64,000 nucleotides of DNA, taken from positions 1 to 64,000 of the IMG/VR virus record IMGVR_UViG_3300035212_003113. One strand, 5' to 3'. Shown here in pieces: positions 1 through 62,528 of the stretch. A model generated the notes under the pieces. That model made no database searches. It saw only the letters and a list, made by a program, of their open reading frames with translations, and had not been told where the DNA came from. Position numbers and translations under genes: made by a program. Numbering within the stretch: the first letter of the stretch is position 1; each line of letters begins with the position of its first letter.

Positions 1-29
1 CATTAGACTGCCTTTGCACGGAGGACAAA

Positions 30-494
30 ATGAAACTAGACGTCTGGTCTCTCCTCGATGCTGGTGGCGTCTTTCAATACGGAAGGTACGAGATCAGGAA
101 CAGTAATGGCTTGCTTCACCGGGATGACGGCCCTGCTGCCATCTTTCCTGATGGCACTCAGCTTTGGTACCGGAATGGCTTGCTTCACCGGGATGATGGC
201 CCTGCTGCCATAGAGTCTAATGGTATACGATACTGGTACCGGAATGGCGAGCGTCACCGGGATGACGCCCCTGCTATCATCTGTCCTGATGGTAGTTGTC
301 ATTGGTACCGTGATGGCCAGCGTCACCGGGATGACGGGCCTGCTGCTATCTATCCGGATGGTACTCGGCTTTGGTATCGGCATGGCATGCGTCACCGGGA
401 AGACGGCCCAGCTATCATCTATCCTGATGGTAAGGGGTCTTGGCACCTGAATGGCGCCTATCAACACAAGGTAGGATGGATAAGTGAAACTTGA
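30..494 (+). CDS. HRxDGPA-repeat protein (5 repeats)
   Basis: 23-aa HR(D/E)DGPAxxYPDGxxxWYRNG repeats; N-term MKLDVW-SLLDAGG (lacks the ~5-aa EAISS-type segment of its paralogs). Confidence 0.85.
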   Translation: MKLDVWSLLDAGGVFQYGRYEIRNSNGLLHRDDGPAAIFPDGTQLWYRNGLLHRDDGPAAIESNGIRYWYRNGERHRDDAPAIICPDGSCHWYRDGQRHRDDGPAAIYPDGTRLWYRHGMRHREDGPAIIYPDGKGSWHLNGAYQHKVGWISET

Positions 495-951
495 TGCCTG
501 GGAAGCCATCTCATCCCTCATTGCAGCCGGCGGTGTCTTTCAATACGGAAGGTATCAGATTGTAGATAGTAATGGCGAGCTTCACCGGGAAGACGGACCT
601 GCTGTTGTATATCCACACGGTACTCAGTATTGGTATCGTAGCGACCAGCTACACAGGGATGATGGTCCTGCTATTATCTATCCGGATGGTAGTCAGGAAT
701 GGTACAGGAATGGCAAGCTCCACCGGGACAATGGGCCTGCTGTTGTATATCCAGATGGCACTCAGCATTGGTACCGGAACGACGAGCCTCACCGGGATGA
801 CGGGCCTGCTACCATCTATTCAAATGGCACTCAGAAATGGTACCGGGATGGCAAGCCTCACCGAGAAGACGGGCCTGCTATCATTTATTCAGACGGTACT
901 AAATCCTGGTATTTGAATGGCAAACTCCAGAAATGGCAAAATCCAGAGTAA
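484..951 (+). CDS. HRxDGPA-repeat protein (5 repeats)
   Basis: GTG start, MKLDAWEAISSLIAAGG N-term, 23-aa repeats. Confidence 0.85.
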   Translation: MKLDAWEAISSLIAAGGVFQYGRYQIVDSNGELHREDGPAVVYPHGTQYWYRSDQLHRDDGPAIIYPDGSQEWYRNGKLHRDNGPAVVYPDGTQHWYRNDEPHRDDGPATIYSNGTQKWYRDGKPHREDGPAIIYSDGTKSWYLNGKLQKWQNPE

Positions 952-958
952 AAAATAA

Positions 959-1282
959 ATGAAACTAGATGTCTGGGAAGCAATATCTTCCCTCCTCGAT
1001 GCCGGCGGTAAGTTTCAAGACGATAGGTATGAGGTCCGGGCTAGTAATGGCCATCTCCATCGGGGCGACGGGCCTGCTATCATATATGCAGACGGCACTC
1101 AGGAATGGTACCGGAATGGCGCGCTTCATCGGGGCGACGGCCCTGCGGTCATACTACCTAATGGCACTCAAAGCTGGTACCGGAATGGCCTGCGTCACCG
1201 GGCCGACGGTCCTGCTATCATCTATCCAGATGGTGATCAGGAATGGTACCGGGATGGCAATCGTCACTGGGTAGATAAATGA
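959..1282 (+). CDS. HRxDGPA-repeat protein (3 repeats)
   Basis: shared N-term plus repeats. Confidence 0.85.
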   Translation: MKLDVWEAISSLLDAGGKFQDDRYEVRASNGHLHRGDGPAIIYADGTQEWYRNGALHRGDGPAVILPNGTQSWYRNGLRHRADGPAIIYPDGDQEWYRDGNRHWVDK

Positions 1283-1575
1283 AACTAGAAGTCTGGGAAG
1301 ACATATTCTCCCTCATTGAAGCAGGCGGTACCTTTCAAAACGGAAGGTACGAGCTTACAAATAATAATGGAAAGATTCACCGGGATGGCGGCCCAGCTCT
1401 GATATATCTGGACGGTAGGCGCTATTGGTACCAGAATGGCCTGCGTCACCGGGCCTACGGTCCTGCTCTTACATATCCCGATGGCAGACAGTATTGGTAC
1501 TGGAACGGCGCGCTTGTTGATGAGCGGATCGGGGAGGGTTATCGTCAATCCGGTTCCACCGGGAAGATAAAATGA
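1279..1575 (+). CDS. HRxDGPA-repeat protein (2 repeats)
   Basis: shared N-term plus repeats; ATGA overlap. Confidence 0.85.
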   Translation: MKLEVWEDIFSLIEAGGTFQNGRYELTNNNGKIHRDGGPALIYLDGRRYWYQNGLRHRAYGPALTYPDGRQYWYWNGALVDERIGEGYRQSGSTGKIK

Positions 1576-1967
1576 AACTAGATCTCTGGGAAGCCTTGTC
1601 ATCTATCATCGAAGCAGGTGGTGTCTTTCGAAACGGAATATATGAGATCAGGAATAGTAATGGCATGATTCACCGGGATGACGGACCTGCCATTATATCT
1701 CAAGACGGTAGGCACTATTGGTACCGGGATGGCGTGCTTCATCGGGAAGACGGGCCTGCTATCGCATGTCCAGACGGTACTCAGGAGTGGTACCGGAACG
1801 GTACTATTCATCGGGATGGCGGGCCTGCTCTTATATATCAGGATGGTACTCAGGTTTGGTATCAGAATGATGAGATTCACCGTGATGATGGCCCTGCTAT
1901 TATCCATCCAGATGGCACTGAGATTTGGTGCCAGGATGGCCAGCGTAAACATAAGGCAGGAGACTAG
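1572..1967 (+). CDS. HRxDGPA-repeat protein (4 repeats)
   Basis: shared N-term plus repeats; ATGA overlap. Confidence 0.85.
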   Translation: MKLDLWEALSSIIEAGGVFRNGIYEIRNSNGMIHRDDGPAIISQDGRHYWYRDGVLHREDGPAIACPDGTQEWYRNGTIHRDGGPALIYQDGTQVWYQNDEIHRDDGPAIIHPDGTEIWCQDGQRKHKAGD

Positions 1968-2495
1968 ATGAAACTAGACGTCTGGAAAGCAATATCCTCC
2001 CTCCTCGATGCTGGCGGTAAGTTTGAGCACGGAAGATACCAGATCAGGAACAGTAAGGGCCATCTTCACCGGGAAGACGGGCCTGCTGAGGTATTCCCTG
2101 ACGGCTTCCAATACTGGTACCGGAATGGCGTGCTCCACCGTGATGACGGGCCTGCTGAGGTATTCCCTGACGGTAGGCAATGCTGGTACCGGAATGGCCA
2201 GCTACACCGGGAAGACGGGCCTGCCATTGTAGATCCGGATGGCAGTCATCATTGGTACCGGAATGACAAGATTCATCGGGATGATGGACCAGCTATCATT
2301 CATCCAGATGGTGAACAGCATTGGTACCAGAACGACGAGCCTCACCGGGAAGATGGGCCTGCTGTTATATTTTCAGACGGCAAACAATTTTGGTACCGGA
2401 ATGGCAAGCCTCACCGGGATGATGGACCAGCTATCATCTATCCAGACGGTACTCAGAAATGGTATCTGAATGGCAAACTTCAGAGTAAAAAATAA
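1968..2495 (+). CDS. HRxDGPA-repeat protein (6 repeats)
   Basis: shared N-term plus repeats. Confidence 0.85.
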   Translation: MKLDVWKAISSLLDAGGKFEHGRYQIRNSKGHLHREDGPAEVFPDGFQYWYRNGVLHRDDGPAEVFPDGRQCWYRNGQLHREDGPAIVDPDGSHHWYRNDKIHRDDGPAIIHPDGEQHWYQNDEPHREDGPAVIFSDGKQFWYRNGKPHRDDGPAIIYPDGTQKWYLNGKLQSKK

Positions 2496-2843
2496 ATGAA
2501 ACTAGATCTCTGGGAGGCTATCTCATCTCTCCTCCAAGCCGGAGGTGCCTTTCAACACATGAGGTACGAGATCAGGAATAATCATGGCGGGCTTCACCGG
2601 GATGATGGACCTGCTGTCATATATCCAAATGGCAAGCAGGAGTGGTACCGTAATGGCCAGCTTCACCGGGATGATGGACCTGCCGTCATATATCCAAGTA
2701 GTCAATACTGGTATCGCAATGGCCTGATTCATAGGGATGATGGTCCAGCAATTACATATTCAGATGGTGCTCAGTTCTGGTACCTGAATGGCAAGCGCTT
2801 TGGGGAAGATGAAAATGAAGATCCCGAGGAATACTTCCTGTAA
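2496..2843 (+). CDS. HRxDGPA-repeat protein (3 repeats)
   Basis: shared N-term plus repeats; acidic tail. Confidence 0.85.
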   Translation: MKLDLWEAISSLLQAGGAFQHMRYEIRNNHGGLHRDDGPAVIYPNGKQEWYRNGQLHRDDGPAVIYPSSQYWYRNGLIHRDDGPAITYSDGAQFWYLNGKRFGEDENEDPEEYFL

Positions 2844-2944
2844 GGCAAACTACTCCAGTAATCCACACATGAGGCATGCTGGCACACCATGTCCACAAAA
2901 AAGAAAATACTCACAGGACTGAGAGCTGACACGACGACCCGGCC

Positions 2945-2970
2945 CTAAAGCCGGAGTCCCCCGATCCTGA
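2945..2970 (+). promoter_or_regulatory. CTAAA-N13-GATCCTGA motif copy 1
   Basis: CTAAA gccggagtccccc GATCCTGA aggt CGA; promoter role inferred. Confidence 0.65.
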
Positions 2971-3018
2971 AGGTCGAACCCGCCGCAATCGACCGCATCA
3001 CTAACCAGCAACAATAGG

Positions 3019-3231
3019 ATGGTTATGTACGACGACAACTTTGATCACGACAACTATTGCTTTGCAGATCCAGGTGGTAACTCCGCATTGCGTGCAGCTA
3101 CACGCCGCAATCCACGCAACATCCCTTGCCCGACTTGCAAGGAACCAAACCGCTTGACTCCTGCTGATAAAGCTCGCGGCTATCAGTGCGACTCATGCGC
3201 AGATAGGGATGAACGCGGCGGGGACTACTGA
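3019..3231 (+). CDS. small CxxC-CxxC zinc-ribbon-like protein
   Basis: CPTC...CDSC; paralog of 38141..38323. Confidence 0.7.
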   Translation: MVMYDDNFDHDNYCFADPGGNSALRAATRRNPRNIPCPTCKEPNRLTPADKARGYQCDSCADRDERGGDY

Positions 3232-3274
3232 GTAAGAAATATCTATTCTTGTACAGCACTAACAAGGACGGCAT

Positions 3275-3571
3275 ATGAAACACGTTATTTCTGGCAGCGG
3301 CGCTCATCGTATCGAGTGGGGTTCTGCCATTGGTGAGATGACCGGGTATCGTGGCATTGCACAACTCGAGATTGATGGCAAAGTATTCTGCGCTACCACT
3401 GAATACTGGGCGGGAACCCTGCCACCCTTCTTTGAGATCCGGCCTGTTGCCTATACGGAAGACTATCGAAAAGATGGCATCACTGAGGCTGACCAAAGAA
3501 GTCTAAAGGCTTCGATGGATTTCATTAGCCGCTCTTTCTCTGGTGTATCTAACCACAGCCCGAAAGAATAA
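3275..3571 (+). CDS. hypothetical protein
   Basis: ORF with AAGGA SD. Confidence 0.7.
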   Translation: MKHVISGSGAHRIEWGSAIGEMTGYRGIAQLEIDGKVFCATTEYWAGTLPPFFEIRPVAYTEDYRKDGITEADQRSLKASMDFISRSFSGVSNHSPKE

Positions 3572-3572
3572 A

Positions 3573-3887
3573 ATGATTTCTCTACCATTTCATTCCATCA
3601 GCGAGCGACGCCCTAGCGACGGGCAAGAAGTGGCCTGGATTAGACGTGGAGCGGCATTTGGTTTTGATTCTTTCGAGATTCGCTATGATACCGCAGATTA
3701 TTGCTGGTTTGAACTAGGCGAAGATGGCGAGCACAACGGCACCCAGATCGGCTACAGCGGCGAAGAATCTCTTGAAGGTTGCCGCCTAGAAGTAATGTTC
3801 GGGAATGAAACCGCAGACCCGGAAACTCTCTGGTGTTCCATGGAAGAAATCTGGAAGATTCTTGACACAGAAAATCCGCAGCCGTGA
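3573..3887 (+). CDS. hypothetical protein
   Basis: ORF tiling between neighbours; start at second Met of track ORF. Confidence 0.7.
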   Translation: MISLPFHSISERRPSDGQEVAWIRRGAAFGFDSFEIRYDTADYCWFELGEDGEHNGTQIGYSGEESLEGCRLEVMFGNETADPETLWCSMEEIWKILDTENPQP

Positions 3888-4147
3888 AGCTGGATGACTG
3901 GGAGATGCGGGTCGCATTTGCTAAGGAAGACTGGCCGGAGGTTATTTCTATTATGGAATCTACCTTCGGTATCTCCCTGGTTGGCAGACCTACAAGAATC
4001 AATAGAGGCTTTTCTCAGTACCCAGAGATCTGGATCTGCATGCCACGCGGCGGCGCTGAATACGGTTGGTCAGGCCGATCCGGCTTTACCCAGGGACCGC
4101 TAGGCATTCCGATAGGCGAAGATATACAAATCTTTACCACAAAATAA
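3884..4147 (+). CDS. family A paralog
   Basis: MKLDDWEMRVAFAKEDW...TFG...YGW...GF. Confidence 0.8.
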   Translation: MKLDDWEMRVAFAKEDWPEVISIMESTFGISLVGRPTRINRGFSQYPEIWICMPRGGAEYGWSGRSGFTQGPLGIPIGEDIQIFTTK

Positions 4148-4160
4148 ATCAGGAGCAATC

Positions 4161-4634
4161 ATGCTGAGCAGCCGTACCCTCACGATCATGCGTGGCCTGC
4201 CCGGTAGCGGCAAGAGCCACCTCGCACACGCCCTTGCAAACATTCCCGGAGTTTCTCCCGCTCCGGTCTTCTCCACCGATGATTTCTTCATGGTGGATGG
4301 GGAGTACCGCTTTGACGGCAAGCTCCTCGGCAAACACCATGCGGCTAATCTGGCCCGTGCGGTTGCTGCTATGGATGCAGGAACTTCCCATATTATTATT
4401 GACAATACTAACACGCAGGCTTGGGAAGCCCGCGAGTATGTTCGTAACGCGGAGCGATGTGGATATCGCGTACAGTTTATTGAGCCTGCAACCGCATGGG
4501 CGCGAGATCCTGAAGAGTGTGCCCGCCGCAACTCTCATGGCGTACCGTTGCATGCTATTCGTAGTATGTTGGCCCGCTGGGAGACAGATCTGACTGTCGA
4601 GGCCTGCCTGGCAGCCAAGGCCCCCTGGGAATAA
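4161..4634 (+). CDS. P-loop kinase (AAA_33 / polynucleotide-kinase-like)
   Basis: MRGLPGSGKS Walker A, IIIDNTN, RNSHGVP motifs. Confidence 0.8.
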   Translation: MLSSRTLTIMRGLPGSGKSHLAHALANIPGVSPAPVFSTDDFFMVDGEYRFDGKLLGKHHAANLARAVAAMDAGTSHIIIDNTNTQAWEAREYVRNAERCGYRVQFIEPATAWARDPEECARRNSHGVPLHAIRSMLARWETDLTVEACLAAKAPWE

Positions 4635-4649
4635 TCAAGATAGAAAATC

Positions 4650-5036
4650 ATGAAACTTGATACCTGGGAAACTATTTCTTCAATCATTGAAGCCGGTGGT
4701 GTTTACAAAAACGGGTATTACTGCGTTCGCAACAGCAGGGGCCGGCTTCACCGGGATGACGGACCCGCTGCCATATATCCAGATGGTACTCAGTGTTGGT
4801 ACCAGGATGGCGGGCTTCACCGGGGTGATGGGCCAGCTATTATCTATCCAGATGGTACTCAATACTGGTGCCGGAATGGCAAGCGTCACCGGGATAACGG
4901 ACCAGCTATTATCTATCCAGATGGTACTCAGGAATGGTACAGGGCTGGACAGAGAGTGCCAGCCCCGCCCGCCCTAAAGCCGGACCCGCCCGATCCTGAG
5001 CGGTGCCCCGAACGCCACCAACAAGGAGCAATATGA
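4650..5036 (+). CDS. HRxDGPA-repeat protein (3 repeats)
   Basis: shared N-term plus repeats; C-term reads through motif copy 2. Confidence 0.85.
   Translation: MKLDTWETISSIIEAGGVYKNGYYCVRNSRGRLHRDDGPAAIYPDGTQCWYQDGGLHRGDGPAIIYPDGTQYWCRNGKRHRDNGPAIIYPDGTQEWYRAGQRVPAPPALKPDPPDPERCPERHQQGAI
4974..4999 (+). promoter_or_regulatory. motif copy 2
   Basis: CTAAA gccggacccgccc GATCCTGA. Confidence 0.6.
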
Positions 5037-5221
5037 ACAGCGCCAAGCGAATGTCTGATCTTTTTCTGAACGTCGTACTGATGCATGGCTTCCGCGAGAC
5101 GGATGAGCGCTTTTTCACAGCCTTCAATAACGGGGGCGACTTTGACCCGTTCGCGTTTGATGCCACCTATGACGTACTCATCGAGGACGTGCAGCGCTAT
5201 ATCCTCCCGCAGGAAGCATGA
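5033..5221 (+). CDS. hypothetical protein
   Basis: AAGGAG SD, ATGA overlaps. Confidence 0.65.
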   Translation: MNSAKRMSDLFLNVVLMHGFRETDERFFTAFNNGGDFDPFAFDATYDVLIEDVQRYILPQEA

Positions 5222-5454
5222 TGCTCACCATTATTGCTGCCCTTCTTGCCGGCGCTGTAGTAGGCCGCGTCACGGCAGCCCTGGCCGGAGAAACGATGAT
5301 CTCGAGCTACTGGATCTTCGTCATCGCCTGTCTCTGGCTGTTGGATCGCACGGTTGGTGTGACCATCACAGAGACGTGGCGAAGTGTTCTGGCTGAAAAG
5401 AGGCGCATCCGTGAAGAAGAAAGAGCACGGCACGCACTCGAGGGAGACGTATGA
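5218..5454 (+). CDS. small membrane protein
   Basis: two hydrophobic segments. Confidence 0.6.
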   Translation: MMLTIIAALLAGAVVGRVTAALAGETMISSYWIFVIACLWLLDRTVGVTITETWRSVLAEKRRIREEERARHALEGDV

Positions 5455-5568
5455 CCACACTCGTCCAGCTCACAAAGAATGCGACTCTGTAGTATTCATC
5501 CGAAATTCATAGACAAAGCTGGCCTCGGCACGCTGCCCGCCTATTCCTAATCTACCAAGGAGTCCCCC

Positions 5569-5931
5569 ATGACCGCTGATATCCTGCCTATCCGTGGAAA
5601 AACGCTTACCGATATTACCGGTATCAAGGATGATGACGTCCGCTTTCATTGCGATGATGGTACCGTTTATCGGATGCGCCACCATCAGTCATGCTGCGAG
5701 AGCGTTGGCATCGAGCAGGTCGATGGCGAAATCTCGGATCTTATTGGACCGCCACTCTCTATTGCAGAGGTGGTGTTCAAGGAGCGAGACTCGGAATACG
5801 GCAGCGAAGGCTGGACCTTTTACCGCTTTGCTACGGTCAAAGGCTATGTCACAATCCGCTGGAGCGGCAGCTCTAATGGCTATTACTCCATCCGCGTAGA
5901 CTTTGATCAGGATGATGGTGATGACTACTAG
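5569..5931 (+). CDS. phage-type hypothetical protein
   Basis: CCESV...WTFY...SNGYYS pattern recalled from phage hypotheticals; AAGGAG SD. Confidence 0.75.
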   Translation: MTADILPIRGKTLTDITGIKDDDVRFHCDDGTVYRMRHHQSCCESVGIEQVDGEISDLIGPPLSIAEVVFKERDSEYGSEGWTFYRFATVKGYVTIRWSGSSNGYYSIRVDFDQDDGDDY

Positions 5932-6175
5932 AGGTCAAAAGTTTGTGTCTTTTGTACTGCGCGGGCACGCCCTGCCCGATCAGTATGTGCATGAATCTCG
6001 TACCAGGCTTGTTCTACTTGATGCAGGCGATAGCCATTGGCGAGCTTTCTATAAGGAACGCCGCCTTTGGAACAAGCCGCTATCTGATTGGGACTATGAT
6101 TATCTACGTCCGCTGGGCGTAGCCTTCTCGGACACAGGCGCTGCTATACGCTGGGCTTCTGGCGGGAAGGCATAA
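5921..6175 (+). CDS. hypothetical protein
   Basis: 11-nt overlap with upstream stop. Confidence 0.6.
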   Translation: MTTRGQKFVSFVLRGHALPDQYVHESRTRLVLLDAGDSHWRAFYKERRLWNKPLSDWDYDYLRPLGVAFSDTGAAIRWASGGKA

Positions 6176-7758: not shown

Positions 7759-7967
7759 TGGAATCCCCACACGCCAGCAACATAGACTTCATGATAAAAG
7801 CTCTGGAGTCTAATCCAGATAAGAAGTTTATTGTTCTAGAAGGCAGCGGTCCCGGAGATACTCTGCTGATTGTCTGGCGGAGCGCCAACGAACGAGCGCC
7901 CGGACAATACTACGAGATCCGCGTTGCAGAGATCAAAGAAACTGCTTTCATTCAGGTGAGCAAATGA
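7758..7967 (+). CDS. hypothetical protein
   Basis: TGATG overlap. Confidence 0.6.
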   Translation: MESPHASNIDFMIKALESNPDKKFIVLEGSGPGDTLLIVWRSANERAPGQYYEIRVAEIKETAFIQVSK

Positions 7968-8272
7968 AACTGGACGCTTTCGCTTTGCGAAACGCTGTTG
8001 CAAACAAGGACATAAAAACAATCCTTGATTTGTTCGCAGTGCATTTTGAAGACATAGCCCGCCGGAAGGATGAGCAATGGCAAATAAAGATTTGTCCGTG
8101 GGAACCGCTAGGAATGCTGCGACTAAGAACATCTAGCGGATCTTCCTGCTGGAACGGCCTTGATTACTTCAATGACAGTAAGCTTTACTCTCGTAATGGG
8201 ATAAACCTCATTATGTTTGCCCCGGATTTCTGTAGTGAAACTTGTTCTATTGTTACTGGCACAACTAGATGA
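7964..8272 (+). CDS. family A paralog
   Basis: MKLDAFALRNAV...HF...CW. Confidence 0.7.
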   Translation: MKLDAFALRNAVANKDIKTILDLFAVHFEDIARRKDEQWQIKICPWEPLGMLRLRTSSGSSCWNGLDYFNDSKLYSRNGINLIMFAPDFCSETCSIVTGTTR

Positions 8273-8485: not shown

Positions 8486-8752
8486 ATGAAGCTACTTGAC
8501 CTCCAACTGGACGAAGCATTTGCTGTCCGTGATTATGACGGCATGGTGACGCTAGTTGCGCAGCACCTAAGCATACGGCTCCCAAGAGAGAGGGCGGCTA
8601 TAGATACATCTAGTCCCGGCAACTGGCGCTGGGGCCGAGTGGTTATTTATCAAGATGGCTCCCGCTATATCTATTGCCGTGGTGGTGGCAGTAGAACAAG
8701 TCCTACTGTTTCCATCTTTGATTGCGGAATCATATCAGAGTTGCCAAGATGA
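8486..8752 (+). CDS. family A paralog
   Basis: MKLLDLQLDEAF..RDY...HL. Confidence 0.7.
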   Translation: MKLLDLQLDEAFAVRDYDGMVTLVAQHLSIRLPRERAAIDTSSPGNWRWGRVVIYQDGSRYIYCRGGGSRTSPTVSIFDCGIISELPR

Positions 8753-9039
8753 AGCTAGAGTCGTATGCTATGCGCGAGGCGCTGGAGGCCGGAGATACGG
8801 CCACCGCTGTGCGCGTGCTTGCGACCTACTATGGCTTTCCTGATCCGGTAGAAATACCGATTACCGTAATCGGCAAAAACATGCCGCCTTTTGAAAGAGA
8901 AAGACGCCTGCTATTCTGGTGCGGCGACGACTTCTATGAGTGGAGTTCTGAGTCCGGCTTTGACCGGGGCGTGCATCCTTATTCCCTAGGCAGCGACGTA
9001 GCACCGAGCCGCATAGAAAGCATCATTCTTTGGAAATAG
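8749..9039 (+). CDS. family A paralog
   Basis: MKLESYAMREAL...YYG...YEW...GF. Confidence 0.8.
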   Translation: MKLESYAMREALEAGDTATAVRVLATYYGFPDPVEIPITVIGKNMPPFERERRLLFWCGDDFYEWSSESGFDRGVHPYSLGSDVAPSRIESIILWK

Positions 9040-9727: not shown

Positions 9728-10009
9728 ATGAAGCTACAGTCTATCTTAGTAGCTGAACGGCTTGCTTCCAACGATATGCGAGGCGCATGCAATGCCCTGC
9801 TAGCGAACTTCAACCTCAGTGATCTGCCCACAGGTGCAGAAGTAAGAGTAAATCCCAGCGAAGTTCATGGGGATCATATAATTATTTACACTGCTGGGCA
9901 CTGGTACGAGTGGGGCGAGCGCATGGGATTCAGGACTGGACTGTCTTCTAGTTTCAGCCTACCAGCTACCCGTGCTGTAATCTGGTTGCGGAAGAGGAAG
10001 CCGACATGA
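9728..10009 (+). CDS. family A paralog
   Basis: MKLQS...NFNL...YEW...GF. Confidence 0.75.
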   Translation: MKLQSILVAERLASNDMRGACNALLANFNLSDLPTGAEVRVNPSEVHGDHIIIYTAGHWYEWGERMGFRTGLSSSFSLPATRAVIWLRKRKPT

Positions 10010-10109: not shown

Positions 10110-10367
10110 ATGAAGCTAGACCGGTCTGCAATCATTCACGCCCTAGAGTCCGGCAACAATACAGGGGCCGTGCAAGTCTTGTTTCACTACTTCCGGCTTG
10201 GAGAAGTACCGGGGGATTTGCAAATAATAAGGCGCGTATCTCCTACTATGGAGATGATTTACTATAATGCGGAGTGGTATGGCTGGACAGCCGCACACGG
10301 CTTTCGCAAAAGCCGACTGCCACAAGTGCAAGATCCCCCGCTAGTACAGATATGGTTTCCGCTATGA
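10110..10367 (+). CDS. family A paralog
   Basis: MKLDRS...HYF...YGW...GF. Confidence 0.8.
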   Translation: MKLDRSAIIHALESGNNTGAVQVLFHYFRLGEVPGDLQIIRRVSPTMEMIYYNAEWYGWTAAHGFRKSRLPQVQDPPLVQIWFPL

Positions 10368-10651
10368 AGCTGGAATCCTATGTACTACAAAACGCTATCT
10401 ATGAAGGGCGGCACGAAGAAGCAGTCCGAGGTCTGCTGCAACATTTTGGCATAAACTTACCGGATGCACAGCTGAACATACAGGCAGCAACCGATTCATG
10501 TTATGGCATTTACGTATGGGTAAGCACTAAGTACTTTGAATGGTACGAGGGTAGCTTTTTCTCTGCAAGCTCTTATGTGAGAGGAACGCCATTGCGCGCA
10601 GAAGTAGTAATCGCAACGGTATGGATACGAAGCAAAAATGAAAATCTCTGA
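10364..10651 (+). CDS. family A paralog
   Basis: MKLESYVLQNAIYEG; close to 11566. Confidence 0.8.
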   Translation: MKLESYVLQNAIYEGRHEEAVRGLLQHFGINLPDAQLNIQAATDSCYGIYVWVSTKYFEWYEGSFFSASSYVRGTPLRAEVVIATVWIRSKNENL

Positions 10652-10832
10652 GTGGGCAGTACAGGATGCAGTAGACAGCGGAGACTTCTCCCGCATACTA
10701 CCCATTCTGATTGAGCATTATGGCGTAGGCAGGATTCCCGACTGGGCTGATCCGCAACACGAGCATCCACTTAGTTGCCGCATATGTCAGATGATCCGCC
10801 CTTGGTTGTTTGCAAAAATGGACAGCAAGTGA
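10638..10832 (+). CDS. family A paralog (short, lacks YxW-GF half)
   Basis: MKISEWAVQDAV...EHYG. Confidence 0.6.
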   Translation: MKISEWAVQDAVDSGDFSRILPILIEHYGVGRIPDWADPQHEHPLSCRICQMIRPWLFAKMDSK

Positions 10833-11083
10833 AACTAGATACCTGGGAAGCCGTATCTTCTCTCCTCGATGCCGGTGGTAAGTTTTTTATCGATAAGTAT
10901 TGCCTTGTAAATGACAAAGGTCACTATCATCGGGAAGACGGCCCAGCTGTCATATATCCTAATGGCGATCAGTTTTGGTTGCGCAACGATAAGCTTCACC
11001 GGGAAGACGGCCCGGCTGTCGTCTATTCAGATGGTAAAAAACATTGGTACCTGGATGGTCGACTCCAGCGGGCAGACAAATGA
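10829..11083 (+). CDS. HRxDGPA-repeat protein (2 repeats)
   Basis: GTG MKLDTWEAVSSLLDAGG. Confidence 0.85.
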   Translation: MKLDTWEAVSSLLDAGGKFFIDKYCLVNDKGHYHREDGPAVIYPNGDQFWLRNDKLHREDGPAVVYSDGKKHWYLDGRLQRADK

Positions 11084-11484
11084 AACTTGATATCTGGGGT
11101 GCAATAGATTCTATCCTTGAAGCTGGTGGAAAGTTTTATCAAGGAAAGTATGTCTTTCTAAATGATAATGGTGAGCTTCACCGGGAAGATGGGCCTGCTG
11201 TTATAGAGCCGGATGGTACTCAGGAGTGGTGCCGAAATAACAAGCTTCATCGTGATGATGGACCTGCTATTATATGCCCTGATGGTAGTCAATATTGGTA
11301 CCAGAATGGTGAGCTTCACCGGGATAAAGGTCCCGCTGTATTGTATCCAGATGGTAGTCAGCTTTGGTACCGGAATGGCGAGATTCATCGGGATGGCGGG
11401 CCTGCTGCCGTTTATCCGGATGGCACTCAGCTTTGGTACCGTAATGGCAAGAAGCGCCGTACCGGGCCGGGCAGCAAAGGATAA
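11080..11484 (+). CDS. HRxDGPA-repeat protein (4 repeats)
   Basis: MKLDIWGAIDSILEAGG. Confidence 0.85.
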   Translation: MKLDIWGAIDSILEAGGKFYQGKYVFLNDNGELHREDGPAVIEPDGTQEWCRNNKLHRDDGPAIICPDGSQYWYQNGELHRDKGPAVLYPDGSQLWYRNGEIHRDGGPAAVYPDGTQLWYRNGKKRRTGPGSKG

Positions 11485-11565: not shown

Positions 11566-11859
11566 ATGAAGCTGGAATCCTATGTACTGCAAAGCGCCAT
11601 CTACGAAGGCCAGTACGAAGAAGCGGTGCGCCTGCTGCTGCAACATTTCGGCATAAACTTACCAGGTGTGCAGCTCATCATACAGACCGAACATGATATA
11701 GGCTACGGCATTAGGGCTTGGGTTGGCTCAGATCCCTATGAATGGTATGAAGGTAATTTTTATTTTCCTGCGCCTGACTGGAACACTGACCGGGATTACA
11801 GCAGAGTAAAGATCGTAAGCGCTACGGTTTGGAGCAAGTACAAGCTCAAGAACTCATGA
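11566..11859 (+). CDS. family A paralog
   Basis: MKLESYVLQSAIYEG; close to 10364. Confidence 0.8.
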   Translation: MKLESYVLQSAIYEGQYEEAVRLLLQHFGINLPGVQLIIQTEHDIGYGIRAWVGSDPYEWYEGNFYFPAPDWNTDRDYSRVKIVSATVWSKYKLKNS

Positions 11860-11889
11860 TATACAACTTACTGACAGGTCGGGCCGGCC

Positions 11890-11915
11890 CTAAAGCCGGT
11901 GCCGCCCGATCCTGT
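11890..11915 (+). promoter_or_regulatory. motif copy 3
   Basis: CTAAA gccggtgccgccc GATCCTGT aggt CGA. Confidence 0.65.
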
Positions 11916-12023
11916 AGGTCGAGCCGGTCGCCGCCTCCGGTAAATGCAAGTGGCGGAGAGACAGGAACCAAAACCCCTAATGGTTAGGGGCTAGGCGAAT
12001 GTCCATCAGAAAAGGAAGAGCAC

Positions 12024-25124: not shown

Positions 25125-25212
25125 GGGAAAATGGCCGAGTGGCTTAAGGCACCGGATTACTAACCCGGCGTACCGCAAGGTACCGTGAGTTCGACTCTCA
25201 CTTTTCCCGCCA
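25125..25212 (+). tRNA. tRNA-Ser with ACU anticodon
   Basis: GGGAAAA/TTTTCCC acceptor, TT-ACT-AA loop, long variable arm, G73, encoded CCA. Confidence 0.8.
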
Positions 25213-53009: not shown

Positions 53010-56000
53010 ATGACTATGATTTTTGATCCGGTAATGCTAGATCCCATGCCAGGAGACCGGTCTGGCGGACCTGCCTATGCCAGCGGCAGCATTGGCAATA
53101 TGCTGTATACTGCGGCTATGGCTGGTAGCGATGGCAACCTAATTGGCGTTACGCATAACCTAGCGCCCGCCACCTCTGCTGTAGCGGCCTCGCTAAGCAT
53201 TGACGGCATGACCTACCGCGCCCGCAACGCTGGAGTGGGCGGCAACTCTATAACGGTTCAACACAGCTCTGCGGCCATTGCAGCAATTGCAGCAGGCGCC
53301 ACCATAGGCGGCATCGCTTATACCGCAATAAGCTCTGGCGCTGCTGGTAATAATATATCAGTAACCGCATCGCTAGGCTCTGCTGCTGTTGCCGGCACCG
53401 CCACCCTAAATAGAAGCATTCCTTCTCTGGGAGTAGATTGGCCATTCACCATCACTGATAAGCCGGCTTACTATGGCGTACCAACAACTGTTCGCCTCAT
53501 GGGCAGCAGCATAGAGACGCCCTCTGCCGCTCTGCCTGCAACTGGCGTGAACGATCCGTATTTCGCAAATACTCCGATACTGGTTCGGGCCGGGTCAACG
53601 TCCACCGTAATTAACAACAATACCTTTCGCGATTCCAGCACCAATGCGCTGACAGTTTCTAGAACAGGAAACGTACAGCAGGGTACCTTCTCTCCGCATA
53701 CAAAGCCCGATGGATACTGGAGCACTTTCTTTAGCTCGAGTAGCGACTATATGTCGGTCACAGATAATGTGGCCTTCACGTTTACTGGCGACTTTACAAT
53801 TGAAGCCTGGATCAGTCCTACTGTTGCTGCATCTCAGTCGATAGTATCCCACTGGCAATCAGGCCTGGCCACCGGTTGCTCTTTTGCTCTTCATCTAACG
53901 GCAACGAATGCTCTTCGCTTTTCGTACGGGATTGGGCCGACTAACCTTGCCATTGAGAGCGCGGCCTCCGCAATAACCCTCAATCAGTGGAGCCATGTTG
54001 CGGTCTCACGCAGCGGAACATCTCTCATGATGTTCGTAAATGGTCAGCTAGTTAACAGCACCACGGCATCAGGGTCTCTTAACAATTGCCCTAACCCACT
54101 GTATATTGGAACCACAACAACCGATTTTTTTAGAGGATATATTTCGAACCTGCGCCTTGTCAAAGGCACTGCTGTCTACACTGGCGCCTTTAGTGTACCG
54201 ACGTCTCCTTTGACTGCTGTCTCAGGCACCTCGCTACTGACCTGCCAGAGCAACAACGTATTTGATCGATCAAGCAATGGATTTACGATTACGGCATCTT
54301 ATGCCAAGGTATTGCCAATCGGTCCTTTCGCTAGCCCAGAGTACACTGTCGCCACTAATGGCGCCAGCGCGTACTTTGATGGAGTTGGTGATCTGGCTGC
54401 CATATCAGATAACAATGCATTTACCCTATCTGGCAACTTCACAATTGAGGCATGGATCTACGCCGATCTATCAACGGGTGCGGCAGCAGAGCAGACTATT
54501 GCTGCTCATTGGCTAAGTGCTTCTGCGATTGCATCTTCGTTCATCCTTGCCACTACCTCTACAACGGGCGTTAAGTTCACGTACGCAGTCGGATCAACTA
54601 CTGCAACGCTAACTGGTGCTGCTGGCTCGCTGCGCTCAAGCGCATGGAACCATGTGGCAGTAACTCGCTCAAGCGGCAGCATACGCCTTTTTGCCAATGG
54701 CAGACAGGTTGCTTCCGGTTTTAGCGCATCGGCACTTAACAATAGCACAAGCAACCTGACCCTTGGCTACAGGACCTCGACAGAGACCTTTTATCTAAAA
54801 GGCTACGTGAGCGATTTCCGTGTGATAAATGGCTCTGCTGCTTATACTGCTGCCTTCGCTGTGCCGACAGCTCCTCTTACTGTTGCTCCCTCGACTGCTC
54901 TGCTGCTTAGCTTTGCAAACGCAGAGATACAGAATCTGGGCGGTTTATCAAATATTGAAACAGCTGGTAGCACAATTTCGTGGTCTATTGGTAATAAGTA
55001 CAACTCAAAGAGCGTCTACTTTGACGGCGTTGGAGATTACCTATCGATTGGCCCCGTAAACAATCCGCACCTTGCGATTGGCACGGCAGACTTTACAATT
55101 GAGGCGTGGATTTATAGAACTGCTGGTGGCAGCGGATTCCCGGCCCTATATGCTAACTATGGCGGATCCCGTAGCGGTGCCCACCTACTTAGAATAATAG
55201 GACCCACAAATAAAGCCGCATTCTATGTCTACCCGTCGACTGATGTCGTAACCTCTACCTCAGACATTGCCCTAAATACATGGACGCATATTGCTGTCTC
55301 AAGGTCTGGCTCTAACACGTACCTATATGTCAATGGTGTACTTGAGGCTTCTTCGACTACAGCTTATACTCTGACGTCAGACCCATTGCACCCAGCAACC
55401 TCTGGTGGCTACTGGCAATCAGCTGCCATAGAGCCTAATGGTTACTTCACAGGGCGTATTGAAGACTTGCGAGTGACGGTCGGTGTCGCGCGATACGAGG
55501 GTGCTACCTCTGTTACGCGTGAGCTTAGCGGCAGCACAGAAATTGTTCGCTTCCCAAATAATACAAGCGTCAACCAGATTCTAGCAGTAGTTGGAGATGG
55601 CGGCACCAATGTATCATCGCGGGTAAGCATTAGTGCTACGCCAAGCACAGCGACTCTATCGTTCACTGATCCTGCATCAAACCCAGGAGCAACGACATCT
55701 GGCGGATCTTCTGCGGCTCCTCTGTCAGTGGCAGTCACCGGCAGCGACATAAGCATAACTCTGTCGGCATCAGGTTCGACGTCAGCCGAGGTTTGCACTC
55801 TGCTGACAAATACTGCTAGCACTGCTGCTCTTGTCTCTGCTACTCCCTCTGTCGAGTCAGCAAGCGCTGCTGCTAAGACATTCCTGTCTGGTGGCGTCAA
55901 CGCAAGTGCAGGAGTCCTCGCAGCCTCGGCAAGTGGCGACGCAGTATCCATATCCGTACCGGTCGGCACAACAAATGTTGAACTCAAATCCTTCCTAGAG

Positions 56001-56300
56001 GGCGTAGAGAGCATTGCTGGTGCCAGCGGCATCATAGACCTTGTCGATCCAGCTGGTAGCGCTCCAGTATCAAGCGGACCTCTTGGTCTAGCTGGAGGCG
56101 CAGACCAGGTGCCAGGAGTTCTAGGAATTGCTGTAGTAGGAAATGCAGTATCTGTATCGGTTCCTGCCGGCACAGTTTCGGCAGACCTGGTAACGGCACT
56201 TAATGCGAACGCGCCATTTGCTGCGCTGGCGGTTGCTTCGGCATCGGATGCAGATCCGGTCGAAACAACTGGTACGGTTACGCTATCTGGCGGCCAGTGA
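53010..56300 (+). CDS. large Ala/Ser/Thr-rich protein with three LamG (ConA-like) domains, putative virion appendage
   Basis: three xFTIEAW...WxHxAVxRSxG modules; GGAGG SD. Confidence 0.8.
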   Translation: MTMIFDPVMLDPMPGDRSGGPAYASGSIGNMLYTAAMAGSDGNLIGVTHNLAPATSAVAASLSIDGMTYRARNAGVGGNSITVQHSSAAIAAIAAGATIGGIAYTAISSGAAGNNISVTASLGSAAVAGTATLNRSIPSLGVDWPFTITDKPAYYGVPTTVRLMGSSIETPSAALPATGVNDPYFANTPILVRAGSTSTVINNNTFRDSSTNALTVSRTGNVQQGTFSPHTKPDGYWSTFFSSSSDYMSVTDNVAFTFTGDFTIEAWISPTVAASQSIVSHWQSGLATGCSFALHLTATNALRFSYGIGPTNLAIESAASAITLNQWSHVAVSRSGTSLMMFVNGQLVNSTTASGSLNNCPNPLYIGTTTTDFFRGYISNLRLVKGTAVYTGAFSVPTSPLTAVSGTSLLTCQSNNVFDRSSNGFTITASYAKVLPIGPFASPEYTVATNGASAYFDGVGDLAAISDNNAFTLSGNFTIEAWIYADLSTGAAAEQTIAAHWLSASAIASSFILATTSTTGVKFTYAVGSTTATLTGAAGSLRSSAWNHVAVTRSSGSIRLFANGRQVASGFSASALNNSTSNLTLGYRTSTETFYLKGYVSDFRVINGSAAYTAAFAVPTAPLTVAPSTALLLSFANAEIQNLGGLSNIETAGSTISWSIGNKYNSKSVYFDGVGDYLSIGPVNNPHLAIGTADFTIEAWIYRTAGGSGFPALYANYGGSRSGAHLLRIIGPTNKAAFYVYPSTDVVTSTSDIALNTWTHIAVSRSGSNTYLYVNGVLEASSTTAYTLTSDPLHPATSGGYWQSAAIEPNGYFTGRIEDLRVTVGVARYEGATSVTRELSGSTEIVRFPNNTSVNQILAVVGDGGTNVSSRVSISATPSTATLSFTDPASNPGATTSGGSSAAPLSVAVTGSDISITLSASGSTSAEVCTLLTNTASTAALVSATPSVESASAAAKTFLSGGVNASAGVLAASASGDAVSISVPVGTTNVELKSFLEGVESIAGASGIIDLVDPAGSAPVSSGPLGLAGGADQVPGVLGIAVVGNAVSVSVPAGTVSADLVTALNANAPFAALAVASASDADPVETTGTVTLSGGQ

Positions 56301-61927: not shown

Positions 61928-62227
61928 ATGAAGCTGAACCTGGCCAGAATCATACTTGATGCGCCCGAAGGCTGGGCGGTGCGTAACATCGGCAGGCAGC
62001 TAATCCTACTAAGTCCTCATGGTAAACATCCGAACTGCGAAATAGTTTTTACACTGCGAAAAGATGGATCTTTAATCTATAAAGACTACTACGAAAACGG
62101 CATCTTCCACCGCGAAGACGGCCCAGCAGTAACTGTATATAGCGAGTGCGGTAATACTGCAGAAGAGCTTTTCTACTGTCAGGGAAAGCTGTTAAACAGA
62201 AAGTGCTACAAGGATGAAGCTGAATAA
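61928..62227 (+). CDS. family D paralog
   Basis: MKLNLA...PEGW...HREDGPA. Confidence 0.75.
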   Translation: MKLNLARIILDAPEGWAVRNIGRQLILLSPHGKHPNCEIVFTLRKDGSLIYKDYYENGIFHREDGPAVTVYSECGNTAEELFYCQGKLLNRKCYKDEAE

Positions 62228-62528
62228 AGCGGCGGTGATTGCCGGACTACCTGACGGCTGGGAGCTGCAATACGATGGCGATATCATTTTGTATCAGATG
62301 GGAGACGCAGCAGTACAGCATGAATTCAGCGGCAACAACTTAATCAGTATTTCACATTTCCTAGAAGGAGAGCTGCACCGCGACCCTGTCAACGGGCCAG
62401 CTTATATTTGGTGGGTCGGCGATCAGGTTTATGAGAAATACTTTTTTGCTGGACTGCCTGCTGCCAGTCCCGCTGGCCACTACGGCGTGGTAAAAAAAGA
62501 TGACGGCAGCGTGCTACTTACTTACTAG
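62214..62528 (+). CDS. family D paralog
   Basis: MKLNKA...PDGW...HRDPVNGPA. Confidence 0.75.
   Translation: MKLNKAAVIAGLPDGWELQYDGDIILYQMGDAAVQHEFSGNNLISISHFLEGELHRDPVNGPAYIWWVGDQVYEKYFFAGLPAASPAGHYGVVKKDDGSVLLTY

Follow-up and report, generated by a model that had tools for sequence, protein, structure and literature searches.

Why would a bacteriophage carry ten versions of one short repeat protein, seven of them side by side? The genes lie in the window, which covers the first 64,000 nucleotides of a lake-water genome in IMG/VR, that of a tailed phage of 371,675 bp (372 kb). The original prediction read them as a repertoire of binders in which near-identical units are shuffled between genes and hypervariable positions diversify within a constant framework. 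Together the ten genes make up a multigene family, specific to this lineage and still changing, whose products are small and soluble; the repeat framework is under strong purifying selection and the few free positions evolve close to neutrally.

Organisation of the repeat genes

Scanning the complete genome in six frames for the motif identified 37 HRxxGPA units, with 5, 5, 3, 2, 4, 6 and 3 in the seven adjacent paralogues (g1 to g7) and 3, 2 and 4 in three outlying genes (o1 to o3), exactly as counted originally. All ten ORFs were confirmed on the + strand with unchanged coordinates, and no alternative genetic code was applied in translating them. Matches between paralogues have E-values of 1e-28 to 1e-62 at 54–73% identity, well beyond chance. 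The N-terminal cap MKLDxWEAISSLLxAGGxF, described as common to all, is indeed present in 10 of 10, although the g1 copy lacks EAIS. Similarly, the predicted unit length of 69 nt (23 codons) holds for 36 units but not for one unit of 66 nt (22 codons) in g7 (2643–2708). The HR motifs are exactly 23 residues apart in 26 of 27 intervals, and Tandem Repeats Finder reports a period of 69 in every repeat gene with 71–83% matches.

The array begins with g1 (30–494; 154 aa, five units, cap four residues short), which has a GGAGG ribosome-binding site and whose first 98 nt fall within the genome's 127-bp terminal repeat. The GTG start of g2 (484–951; 155 aa, five units) overlaps the end of g1, and the C-terminal halves of g2 and g6 are 73% identical. 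After g3 (959–1282; 107 aa, three units) follow g4 (1279–1575; 98 aa, two units, one reading HRAYGPA) and g5 (1572–1967; 131 aa, four units), each joined to the gene before it by an ATGA overlap. The longest member is g6 (1968–2495; 175 aa, six units), the protein used for folding, and g7 (2496–2843; 115 aa, three units, one of 22 residues, and an acidic tail) closes the array. Junctions are abutting or overlapping (ATGA, TAAATG, TAGATG). The array comprises exactly seven genes; the gene upstream across the terminal repeat is DUF7447-like and not a paralogue. Among the outliers, o1 (4650–5036; 128 aa, three units, Pro-rich tail) lies directly 3' of an AAA_33 kinase gene (4161–4634), and o2 (10829–11083; 84 aa, two units, GTG start) is linked by an ATGA overlap to o3 (11080–11484; 134 aa, four units). 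The array neighbours are small genes without known function, the AAA_33 kinase, DUF7447 and DUF7448. A search of 50,697 deposited phage records with nucleotides 1–6000 gave no match, and an Rfam scan of the window returned nothing beyond tRNAs.

The array is followed by an intergenic element (2939–2983, +) consisting of the hairpin CCGGC-CCTAAA-GCCGG and then CCGATCCTG, which closes the g1–g7 unit and precedes the gene at 3019. A further copy (4968–5012, +) overlaps the 3' end of o1 and precedes the gene starting at 5033; the Pro-rich tail of o1 is an in-frame reading of this element at 4973. A matching element is found at genome position 371030, upstream of the DUF7447-like gene preceding g1. 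The element is strand-specific, with 20 copies on + and 0 on −, has a folding z of −2.7 and is conserved at the equivalent place after the array of the related contig L018. As the array genes abut or overlap and sit between two copies of the element, they probably form one transcript, and co-transcription probably extends to the upstream DUF7447-like gene. Scans of positions 1–5200 for sigma-70 promoters and intrinsic terminators gave counts at shuffle level, and none of the RNA runs contained array sequence.

Predicted fold of the repeat proteins

The unit consensus is WYRNGxLHRDDGPAxIYPDGTQx, with the register W1 Y2 R3 N4 G5 x6 through to T21 Q22 x23. An AlphaFold2 model of the g6 protein (pLDDT 96.9, pTM 0.87) shows an N-terminal helix and a ribbon of beta-hairpins, in which each unit is predicted to form a MORN-like hairpin and the units together an elongated single-layer sheet. 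By this model, an amphipathic helix (residues 2–14) and a degenerate first hairpin would cap the sheet, 2–6 units of 23 residues would make up the MORN-like ribbon, and a terminal half unit (WYxNGK) would close it. The invariant H-R-x-D-G-P-A is placed in the long inter-strand loop, and this motif together with W/Y/I residues makes up the modelled framework.

The top Foldseek matches of the g6 model are MORN1, junctophilin, radial-spoke proteins and MORN4 (E 3e-6 upward), and VIA-align gives Z scores of 8.4–9.1 over ~147 residues for MORN1 and RSP proteins. These best structural matches belong to the MORN proteins (TbMORN1/TgMORN1/PfMORN1, junctophilins, MORN4, RSP1/RSP10; PF02493), with which the phage proteins share a 23-residue period, one hairpin per unit, an elongated twisted single-layer sheet, and an N-G turn followed by H three residues on (NGxxH). 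Defined by structure, the MORN repeat includes GxG, a conserved G at position 10 and YEGEW (PMC7725318). The phage units, however, lack all three and instead carry the signature WYxNGxLHRxDGPA with an invariant H-R...P-A loop, and the two loops differ in length by two residues. They are further set apart by being phage-encoded, by their small size (84–175 aa), by their own helical cap and by the absence of a Pfam MORN match, with none of the ten proteins reported by PF02493 at E up to 0.1. A family profile searched against all PDB sequences found no match.

The resemblance to junctophilin and MORN1 recalls the classical view of MORN repeats as membrane or lipid targeting modules. For the phage proteins this is highly improbable, as MORN lipid binding has been re-evaluated and not confirmed, with the repeats described as protein-protein interaction modules (PMC7725318), and the ten proteins are mildly acidic to neutral (pI 5.1–6.9, one 8.9) with no hydrophobic segment. 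MORN1 proteins also form tail-to-tail dimers through their C-terminal repeats (PMC7725318), and the overlapping starts and stops of the phage genes suggest fixed production ratios. Both would suit translationally coupled paralogues that self-assemble as homo- or hetero-oligomers into an intracellular structure, which is considered unlikely. A homodimer prediction for g6 scored 0.00, but was run without controls and counts neither for nor against.

Two further structural matches lie outside the MORN proteins. The CPAP/SAS-4 G-box (TCP10_C; Z 7.5–8.2) has a comparable open single-layer sheet and binds a proline-rich peptide along it, but differs in repeat length and motif and belongs to a eukaryotic centriole protein. 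Matches to Tcp10_C are sub-threshold, and the likeness is probably that of an analogous fold only. A baseplate chain of phage PhiTE (Z 6.4) is an example of the single-layer beta sheets found in phage baseplates, and could suggest virion-associated proteins (decoration, fibre or baseplate accessory) in which the number of units sets the length. A ConA-like lectin protein, with cyanophage counterparts annotated as structural, is encoded in the same window (53010–56300). However, a Z of 6.4 falls in a range that the tool calls common, and the array lies among small accessory genes ~50 kb from the lectin gene. No relative has a structural annotation, and the homologue gp09 of Celeribacter phage P12053L sits in an early/replication module, between thyX/endonuclease and primase genes. 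A place in the virion is thus improbable.

Variability and selection within the unit

The prediction of variable residues in a constant framework holds in that few positions are free, but it had placed them in the residues before WY and after PA and had missed position 6, one of the main ones along with 23 and 21. Ranked in bits, variability is highest at position 6 (3.1) and 23 (3.0), followed by 21 (2.4), 15 (2.1), 17 (1.9) and 7 (1.9), whereas H8, R9, P13, A14 and G20 are invariant in all units. Positions 6, 21 and 23 are therefore free to vary, with 7, 15 and 17 less so. The residues directly after PA, thought to be variable, are mainly a conservative choice of I, V, A or L. Going by the DSSP assignment of the model, positions 15 and 23 would sit side by side across strands, and R3 would be the pairing partner of position 6 beside the N-G turn.

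Across 20 independent close unit pairs, dN/dS is 0.96 at positions 6, 21 and 23, 0.85 at all six positions and 0.17 in the framework. The diversifying selection expected of a binder repertoire is not borne out, as dN/dS does not exceed 1 at the free positions, and the lack of a non-synonymous excess there gives no sign of an arms race. Overall pN/pS is 0.40–0.45 with synonymous sites saturated. Per-column pN/pS over all unit pairs was dropped as a selection test due to this saturation (pS ~0.55), which also makes the all-pairs values unreliable where they exceed 1, at positions 6, 7 and 21.

The same positions are variable in 584 database homologue units (Spearman 0.88), and the same variability profile is found in four independent arrays (0.71–0.82). 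This indicates that the pattern belongs to the fold and not to this array, and together with the dN/dS values it means that "hypervariable" was an overstatement. A diversity-generating retroelement was also considered as the origin of the variation and was ruled out, as the 371,675-bp genome has no reverse transcriptase match (PF00078), while control genomes were detected.

The units are also far from near-identical, as they had been called. Pairwise nucleotide identity averages 68% (range 49–90%), and the longest exact match between genes of this genome is 28 nt. The unit tree cuts across gene boundaries, the nearest neighbour of a unit lying in the same gene for 6 of 36 units (permutation p 0.14), which, with units of only 69 nt, is weak either way.

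Relatives of the repeat family

Matches to the HRxDGPA repeat in BFVD, at 36–50% identity, include Mimivirus R871, Powai lake megavirus, Megavirus, Marseillevirus LCMAC101, Orpheovirus and the Agrobacterium jumbo phage Atu_ph07, bearing out the initial impression that this repeat occurs in hypothetical proteins of large viruses. The nearest Atlas clusters consist mainly of tailed-phage proteins, one of them named DUF6745. At the DUF6745 (PF20530) cut-off of 27 bits, six of the ten proteins pass (28.6–42.2) and four fall below (19.2–26.6), with only positions ~59–100 of 206 covered, matched repeatedly. By these profile matches, the ten proteins share the repeat part of DUF6745 and not the whole domain. 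The repeat family itself is already known, as part of DUF6745 and from large viruses whose proteins are functionally uncharacterised. This phage differs from those relatives in its seven-gene array and in the MKLDxWEAISSLL cap, which was detected in no more than five further protein clusters; four of these could be traced to contigs, all short. Literature searches on DUF6745, or on MORN with jumbo, huge or mega phages, found nothing on this repeat family.

One BFVD neighbour, from Pithovirus (E 2e-5), is annotated "Antitoxin". This raises the possibility of antitoxin-type proteins related to YwqK/MORN_2, each paralogue binding and blocking a different abortive-infection or polymorphic toxin of the host, much as orphan immunity arrays do. 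Immunity islands typically hold divergent small binders in tandem arrays, and YwqK/MORN_2 proteins are small binding proteins, often arrayed, with a related hairpin repeat (WYxNGK...). In two of the phage proteins, MORN_2 (PF07661) matches the C-terminal half unit with 15.6 and 22.1 bits. In addition, o1 adjoins the AAA_33 kinase, which has a match to Zeta_toxin, and the two genes are neighbours in contig L016 as well. However, neither MORN_2 match reaches the gathering score of 29.6, and an NCBIfam scan of the repeat proteins found no YwqK model match and nothing meaningful, as did a PADLOC scan. The Zeta_toxin score of 17 is below the cut-off of 22.3 and covers the P-loop only, and no toxin domain or partner toxin gene adjoins the seven-gene array. 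An antitoxin role is consequently regarded as unlikely.

Change among related phage contigs

Orthologue groups were recovered in related phage contigs with a cap tree as well as with synteny. Unit numbers across these groups are 5 vs 2, 3 vs 2 vs 5, 3 vs 2 vs 3, 6 vs 3 and 4 vs 5, so the variable repeat number noted originally applies to orthologues as well as paralogues. The g1 orthologue L018_a has the same cap deletion with 2 units vs 5, and the g7 orthologue L018_c has the same tail with 2 units vs 3. The g3 gene has orthologues in L016_c/P0122 and P0121, the g5 cap is similar to the L018_b cap, with the starts of the two matching exactly over 26 nt, and P0067, a relative of g6, has 3 units vs 6. 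For the outliers, o3 has 4 units vs 5 in L019_b at the syntenic position, and the o2 orthologue L019_x is frameshifted.

Several of these genes carry traces of how they changed. L018_b contains a perfect 168-nt unit duplication; L018_a and L018_o, paralogues 3.2 kb apart, share a 99-nt identical tract with flanks of 63% and 32% identity; and L016_c is chimeric, its 5' part being that of g3 and its 3' part that of o1. Going by these sequence comparisons, the family evolves through gene duplication and through the addition or loss of whole 69-nt units, with occasional gene conversion between paralogues and the formation of chimeras from them. The proposed shuffling between genes is hence seen in related contigs, in the 99-nt tract and the chimera, whereas within this genome exact matches between genes do not exceed 28 nt. 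A river metagenome contig has 6 changes within 20 nt in the second unit of g4, at a depth of 2.4 where errors are possible, and no exact match of ≥14 nt in this genome could serve as donor of this patch.

The freely differing copy and unit numbers between related phages, the frameshift in L019_x and the near-neutral free positions would be compatible with by-products of slippage or unequal recombination, that is, "junk" genes with little or no function. This is very unlikely given the framework dN/dS of 0.17 and the ten intact reading frames maintained despite saturated synonymous sites. Several paralogues also have orthologues in related phages and must therefore have been kept long, and contigs with zero differences span most of the array in two more lake metagenome runs (2020 and 2024, from two studies).

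Putative role of the repeat proteins

The reading of the ten genes as accessory and probably co-transcribed, and of their products as protein-binding scaffolds, is given about an even chance, by analogy with structurally similar proteins. In MORN4, junctophilin and the CPAP G-box, a partner's peptide or helix is held along the sheet, and the ten proteins would by analogy bind in this way. In the infected cell they would probably serve as a set of adaptors or inhibitors that bind proteins, with differing lengths and surfaces that would allow different host or phage partners. A non-structural accessory role is suggested by the small accessory genes around the array and the replication surroundings of P12053L gp09. 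Fusion of the repeat in relatives to RING fingers and other N-terminal domains argues for a binding module.

Amoebal giant viruses have expanded repeat-protein gene families of the ankyrin, MORN, FNIP and LRR types (PMC5753266). These resemble the phage family in their clustered paralogues, location in the accessory part of the genome, variable unit number and presumed protein-protein interaction with host factors. They differ in that this phage has a bacterial host, far smaller proteins and no F-box or effector domains.

Further arrays of the repeat, larger ones among them, occur in giant viruses, in a 402-kb huge phage (49 matches across ~23 kb), in a 146-kb huge-phage fragment (40 matches) and in the mobilisation region of a Janthinobacterium element, where seven repeat genes lie between a MobC-like and a relaxase-like gene. 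Among HRxDGPA arrays the cap is particular to each lineage and unit number varies. The presence of arrays in phages as well as on a mobilisable element suggests a role within the newly invaded cell. It is possible, though doubtful, that they are a general repertoire of invading genetic elements, one undescribed in the literature searched. If so, each paralogue would bind a different protein of the cell just entered, serving takeover or counter-defence, and the arrays would be a prokaryotic counterpart of the giant-virus ankyrin and MORN expansions. The phage family itself brings bacteriophages under a pattern known from giant viruses, whereby very large viral genomes grow partly via expansion of repeat-protein families.

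The locus is also a convenient natural system for repeat-gene evolution in viruses, combining unit gain and loss, conversion and chimeras. Its confidently modelled hairpin scaffold is very small, at 23 residues per unit with about three free positions and a natural range of 2–6 units, and may be of interest to protein engineers.

Layout of the repeat genes

The repeat array is real, and the original prediction described it largely correctly. Ten plus-strand ORFs carry the 37 predicted units, with seven adjacent paralogues, g1 (30–494, 5 units), g2 (484–951, 5), g3 (959–1282, 3), g4 (1279–1575, 2), g5 (1572–1967, 4), g6 (1968–2495, 6), and g7 (2496–2843, 3), and three outliers, o1 (4650–5036, 3), o2 (10829–11083, 2), and o3 (11080–11484, 4). 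Successive HR motifs lie exactly 23 codons from one another except at one 22-codon unit in g7, and Tandem Repeats Finder gives a period of 69 in all repeat genes. Paralogues match one another at E 1e-28 to 1e-62. The common N-terminal cap, MKLDxWEAISSLLxAGGxF, is found as predicted in all ten, although that of g1 is four residues short. Two of the ten start with GTG, and neighbouring genes abut or overlap by 4–11 nt. Read across the terminal repeat of the genome, the gene upstream of g1 is DUF7447-like, which limits the array to exactly seven members. Other long ORFs, whether antisense or in another frame, only mirror the repeat.

A gene for an AAA_33 P-loop kinase (4161–4634) lies directly upstream of o1, and this adjacency of kinase and repeat gene is conserved in the related contig L016. 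The P-loop part of the kinase gives sub-threshold matches to Zeta_toxin and to PADLOC CARF_PDDEXK_AAA.

Fold and family assignment

From an alignment of 50 paralogue and homologue sequences, AlphaFold2 modelled the six-unit protein g6 with a pLDDT of 96.9 and a pTM of 0.87. In this model a helix at residues 2–14 and two short cap strands precede strictly periodic short strands. Foldseek placed MORN1 of Trypanosoma, Toxoplasma, and Plasmodium on top (E from 3e-6), then junctophilin-2, radial-spoke proteins, MORN4, and the SET7/9 N-domain. A second structural aligner scored MORN1 and RSP proteins at Z 8.4–9.1 over ~147 residues and the CPAP G-box at a Z of about 8. MORN repeats, when defined by structure, have a 23-residue period, a hairpin ribbon, and the GxG, G10, and YEGEW motifs (PMC7725318). 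The phage unit shares the period and, in the predicted model, the ribbon but lacks all three motifs. No Pfam MORN match was reported for the repeat proteins and their MORN_2 scores fall below threshold, while DUF6745 exceeds the Pfam cut-off in six of ten, over only about positions 59–100 of its 206-position profile. Given the shared period and ribbon, the missing motifs, and the partial DUF6745 match, the phage repeat is MORN-like, of the DUF6745 type, and not a canonical MORN protein. The array is an expanded repeat-protein family of a large virus, of a kind already known.

Variable positions and selection

With the unit numbered from W1 to x23, positions H8, R9, P13, A14, and G20 are invariant, and positions 6, 23, 21, 15, 17, and 7 vary most. 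This profile matches that of 584 units in database homologues (Spearman 0.88) and recurs in four independent arrays, from three other phages and one bacterial mobile element (0.71–0.82), and is therefore a property of the fold. From the DSSP pattern of the predicted model, positions 15 and 23 would be expected to be cross-strand neighbours, and position 6 to pair with R3 at the N-G turn.

Over all unit pairs pN/pS is 0.40–0.45; per-column values are unreliable because synonymous sites are saturated (pS about 0.55). dN/dS was instead taken from 20 independent pairs of close units from the phage genome and related contigs. It is 0.17 outside the six free positions, which together give 0.85, while positions 6, 21, and 23 alone give 0.96. 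Strong constraint thus acts on the framework while the free positions drift approximately neutrally, and these pairs hold no signal of positive selection at the free positions. The constant framework that had been predicted is upheld, but the accompanying hypervariable positions are about neutral. Near-neutral expansion of the family, a rival to the functional reading favoured below, agrees with the drift of the free positions, but the constraint elsewhere speaks against it. An origin of the variation in a DGR is ruled out, as the phage genome contains no reverse transcriptase.

Evolution in related phages

The units had been described as near-identical and open to shuffling between genes. In the phage genome, however, they are old: their nucleotide identity averages only 68% (49–90%), and the longest exact match is 28 nt across genes and 29 nt within one gene. 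The cap family was found in only five other protein clusters (P0026, P0067, and P0121–P0123), of which P0026 and P0122 trace to short metagenome contigs syntenic with the window. Six orthologue groups emerge from the cap tree, a cap deletion and tails held in common, and synteny (suffixes mark repeat genes on related contigs): g1 with L018_a (5 vs. 2 units), g3 with L016_c and P0121 (3 vs. 2 vs. 5), g7 with L018_c and L016_b (3 vs. 2 vs. 3), g6 with P0067 (6 vs. 3), o1 with L014_o and L018_o, and o2 with L019_x. The phage genome has seven array genes where L018 has three, each array followed by the same zinc-ribbon gene.

L018_b contains a perfect 168-nt stretch equal to 2.4 identical units. 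L018_a and L018_o, 3.2 kb apart, share an identical 99-nt tract whose flanks are 63% and 32% identical, and L016_c joins the 5' part of g3 to the 3' part of o1. These are recent events in relatives, so unit turnover and exchange between paralogues are real in the lineage. Exchange between genes thus holds for the lineage, on the evidence of the tract and the chimera, but not as a recent event in the phage genome itself. Contigs from two further lake samples, covering 269–1571 and 1575–3421 in one and 1–2469 in the other, span the greater part of the array and show zero differences. One low-depth river metagenome contig carries six changes in 20 nt (1442–1461) in the second unit of g4, altering LRHRAYG to QRHRNDG, nearer the consensus; no donor for this patch (at least 14 nt) exists in the phage genome. 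In the o2 orthologue (L019 7053–7441) a frameshift follows the first unit and later units lie in another frame, a pattern compatible with a pseudogene, a programmed shift, or an assembly error.

The phage and an intergenic element

The window comprises bases 1–64000 of an IMG/VR record of 371,675 bp, rated 100% complete. A 127-bp repeat at both ends (1–127 and 371549–371675) includes the ribosome-binding site and first 98 nt of g1, and a contig from another lake sample continues unbroken past position 1 for 529 nt upstream, the pattern that a circular or concatemeric assembly would give. Sampled words of the phage DNA are 83–100% present in five lake-water metagenome runs from different studies, identifying the source as a freshwater huge tailed phage; smaller shares are present in river, wastewater, and freshwater runs. 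The window has ~51% GC, mainly small and mainly plus-strand genes, and five scattered tRNA genes. It also encodes a PP-loop ATPase, a MoxR-type AAA protein with a VWA partner, an M16 peptidase, and a ConA-like lectin protein. ARAGORN calls a tRNA-Ser at 25125–25212 whose ACT anticodon places an unusual A in the wobble position, and Rfam confirms a tRNA there.

A conserved intergenic element consists of the hairpin CCGGC-CCTAAA-GCCGG, 5–9 nt, and then CCGATCCTG, and stands 20–60 nt upstream of a GGAG site and start codon. Strict copies number 20 on the plus strand and 0 on the minus strand of the genome. They lie at 2939–2983, 4968–5012, 11884–11928, 14086, 23043, 29916, 34003, 39754, and 42597 in the window, with further plus-strand copies at genome 69–115 kb and 362–371 kb; the majority fall in the stretch that runs from 362 kb through the genome ends to 43 kb. 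The element accounts for a depth peak and loose contig ends at 2933–2981. It matches no Rfam family, and recurs in L018, where it likewise follows the array, and in L019. Its probable role is to delimit operons of the accessory arm, as a phage promoter or 5'-leader signal. Copies at genome 371030 and window 2939 flank the DUF7447-like gene and g1–g7, and within the array sigma-70 promoter and terminator signals do not exceed the chance level. This arrangement points to a single transcript with translational coupling.

The Pro-rich tail of o1 (PAPPALKPDPPDPE...) is an in-frame translation of the element (4968–5036), and the next gene starts at 5033, overlapping the o1 stop. Similar tails end L016_c, L014_o, and L018_o.

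Occurrence in other elements

The repeat is very common, with 7,732 of 8,000 scored candidates matching at E ≤0.001. Many homologues carry other N-terminal domains (DUF7666, zinc-finger-like) or C-terminal RING fingers. That the repeat is familiar from large-virus proteins is borne out by BFVD matches at 36–50% identity in uncultured tailed phages, Agrobacterium phage Atu_ph07, and the giant viruses Powai lake megavirus, Mimivirus (R871), Megavirus, Marseillevirus, Harvfovirus, Hyperionvirus, and Orpheovirus. Tailed-phage proteins make up most of the closest Atlas clusters, and a search of 50,697 deposited phage records found the repeat in just two, Atu_ph07 and Celeribacter phage P12053L.

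Arrays of the same kind reach a larger size in other elements than in the window. A 402,383-bp IMG/VR phage record (L026/L027) has 49 matches to g6, mostly within ~23 kb (about 87–110 kb) on one strand, a 145,656-bp phage fragment (L023, 0–32 kb) has 40, and a third phage record (L022) has six, in six adjacent genes. Each array has its own cap, such as MITxxTLxxLxAC..GVEPTPEV in one and MNPVVDxxGTQRWY in another, with 2–12 units per gene. In Janthinobacterium sp. (GCA_051380715.1, L034 4471–7851) seven adjacent genes with 4-nt overlaps carry 5, 5, 4, 5, 4, 3, and 3 units, a common cap, MKNGRYEE, and a basic tail ending KRSKI. This array has the same architecture as that of the window but lies on a mobilisable element, with a MobC/NikA-like gene on one side and a relaxase-like gene (444 aa) on the other. 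A 29%-GC bacterium (L035–L037, contigs of 0.4–2 Mb) has at least 25 adjacent paralogues of 116–156 aa, in each of which one FYFKNGxLHREAGPA unit is accompanied by a conserved tail ending KKxKI; two further members, P0070 and a neighbour of 200 aa, have several units. Both bacteria share the basic C-terminal tail, which the phage genes lack. The literature search found no published description of such arrays.

Distant relatives occur in adjacent small genes at 61928–62227 and 62214–62528, with one degenerate unit each (YYENGIFHREDGPA; GELHRDPVNGPA), and in a 387-aa protein at genome 340–341 kb (L012 1477–2640, minus strand) with 2–3 C-terminal units after an uncharacterised N-terminal domain. 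None of the three has a Pfam match.

Possible functions

The repeat genes have an accessory, non-structural setting, and the P12053L homologue sits in an early/replication module. A sequencing-run search found no RNA runs containing the phage sequence. Solved proteins of MORN-like fold hold partner peptides or helices along the sheet. MORN repeats are considered protein-protein modules (PMC7725318), and RING finger fusions to the repeat are seen in relatives. With the non-structural setting, these analogies favour a reading in which the ten proteins would be a panel of intracellular protein-binding adaptors or inhibitors, a statement whose chances, taken whole, are about even. Rival roles, each much less likely, are as virion parts, to be set against the non-structural setting, and as antitoxin-like neutralisers, a self-assembling scaffold, or lipid-binding proteins.

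A second family of nine small proteins (64–102 aa) is interleaved with o2 and o3, encoded at 3884–4147, 7964–8272, 8486–8752, 8749–9039, 9728–10009, 10110–10367, 10364–10651, 10638–10832, and 11566–11859. It has no Pfam match, and its consensus is MKLxxxAxxxAxxxGDxxxAVxxLxxHFGxxxP...YEW....GF...W. Its proteins begin with an MKL(D/E) helix similar to the repeat-family cap, and orthologues are present in L019.
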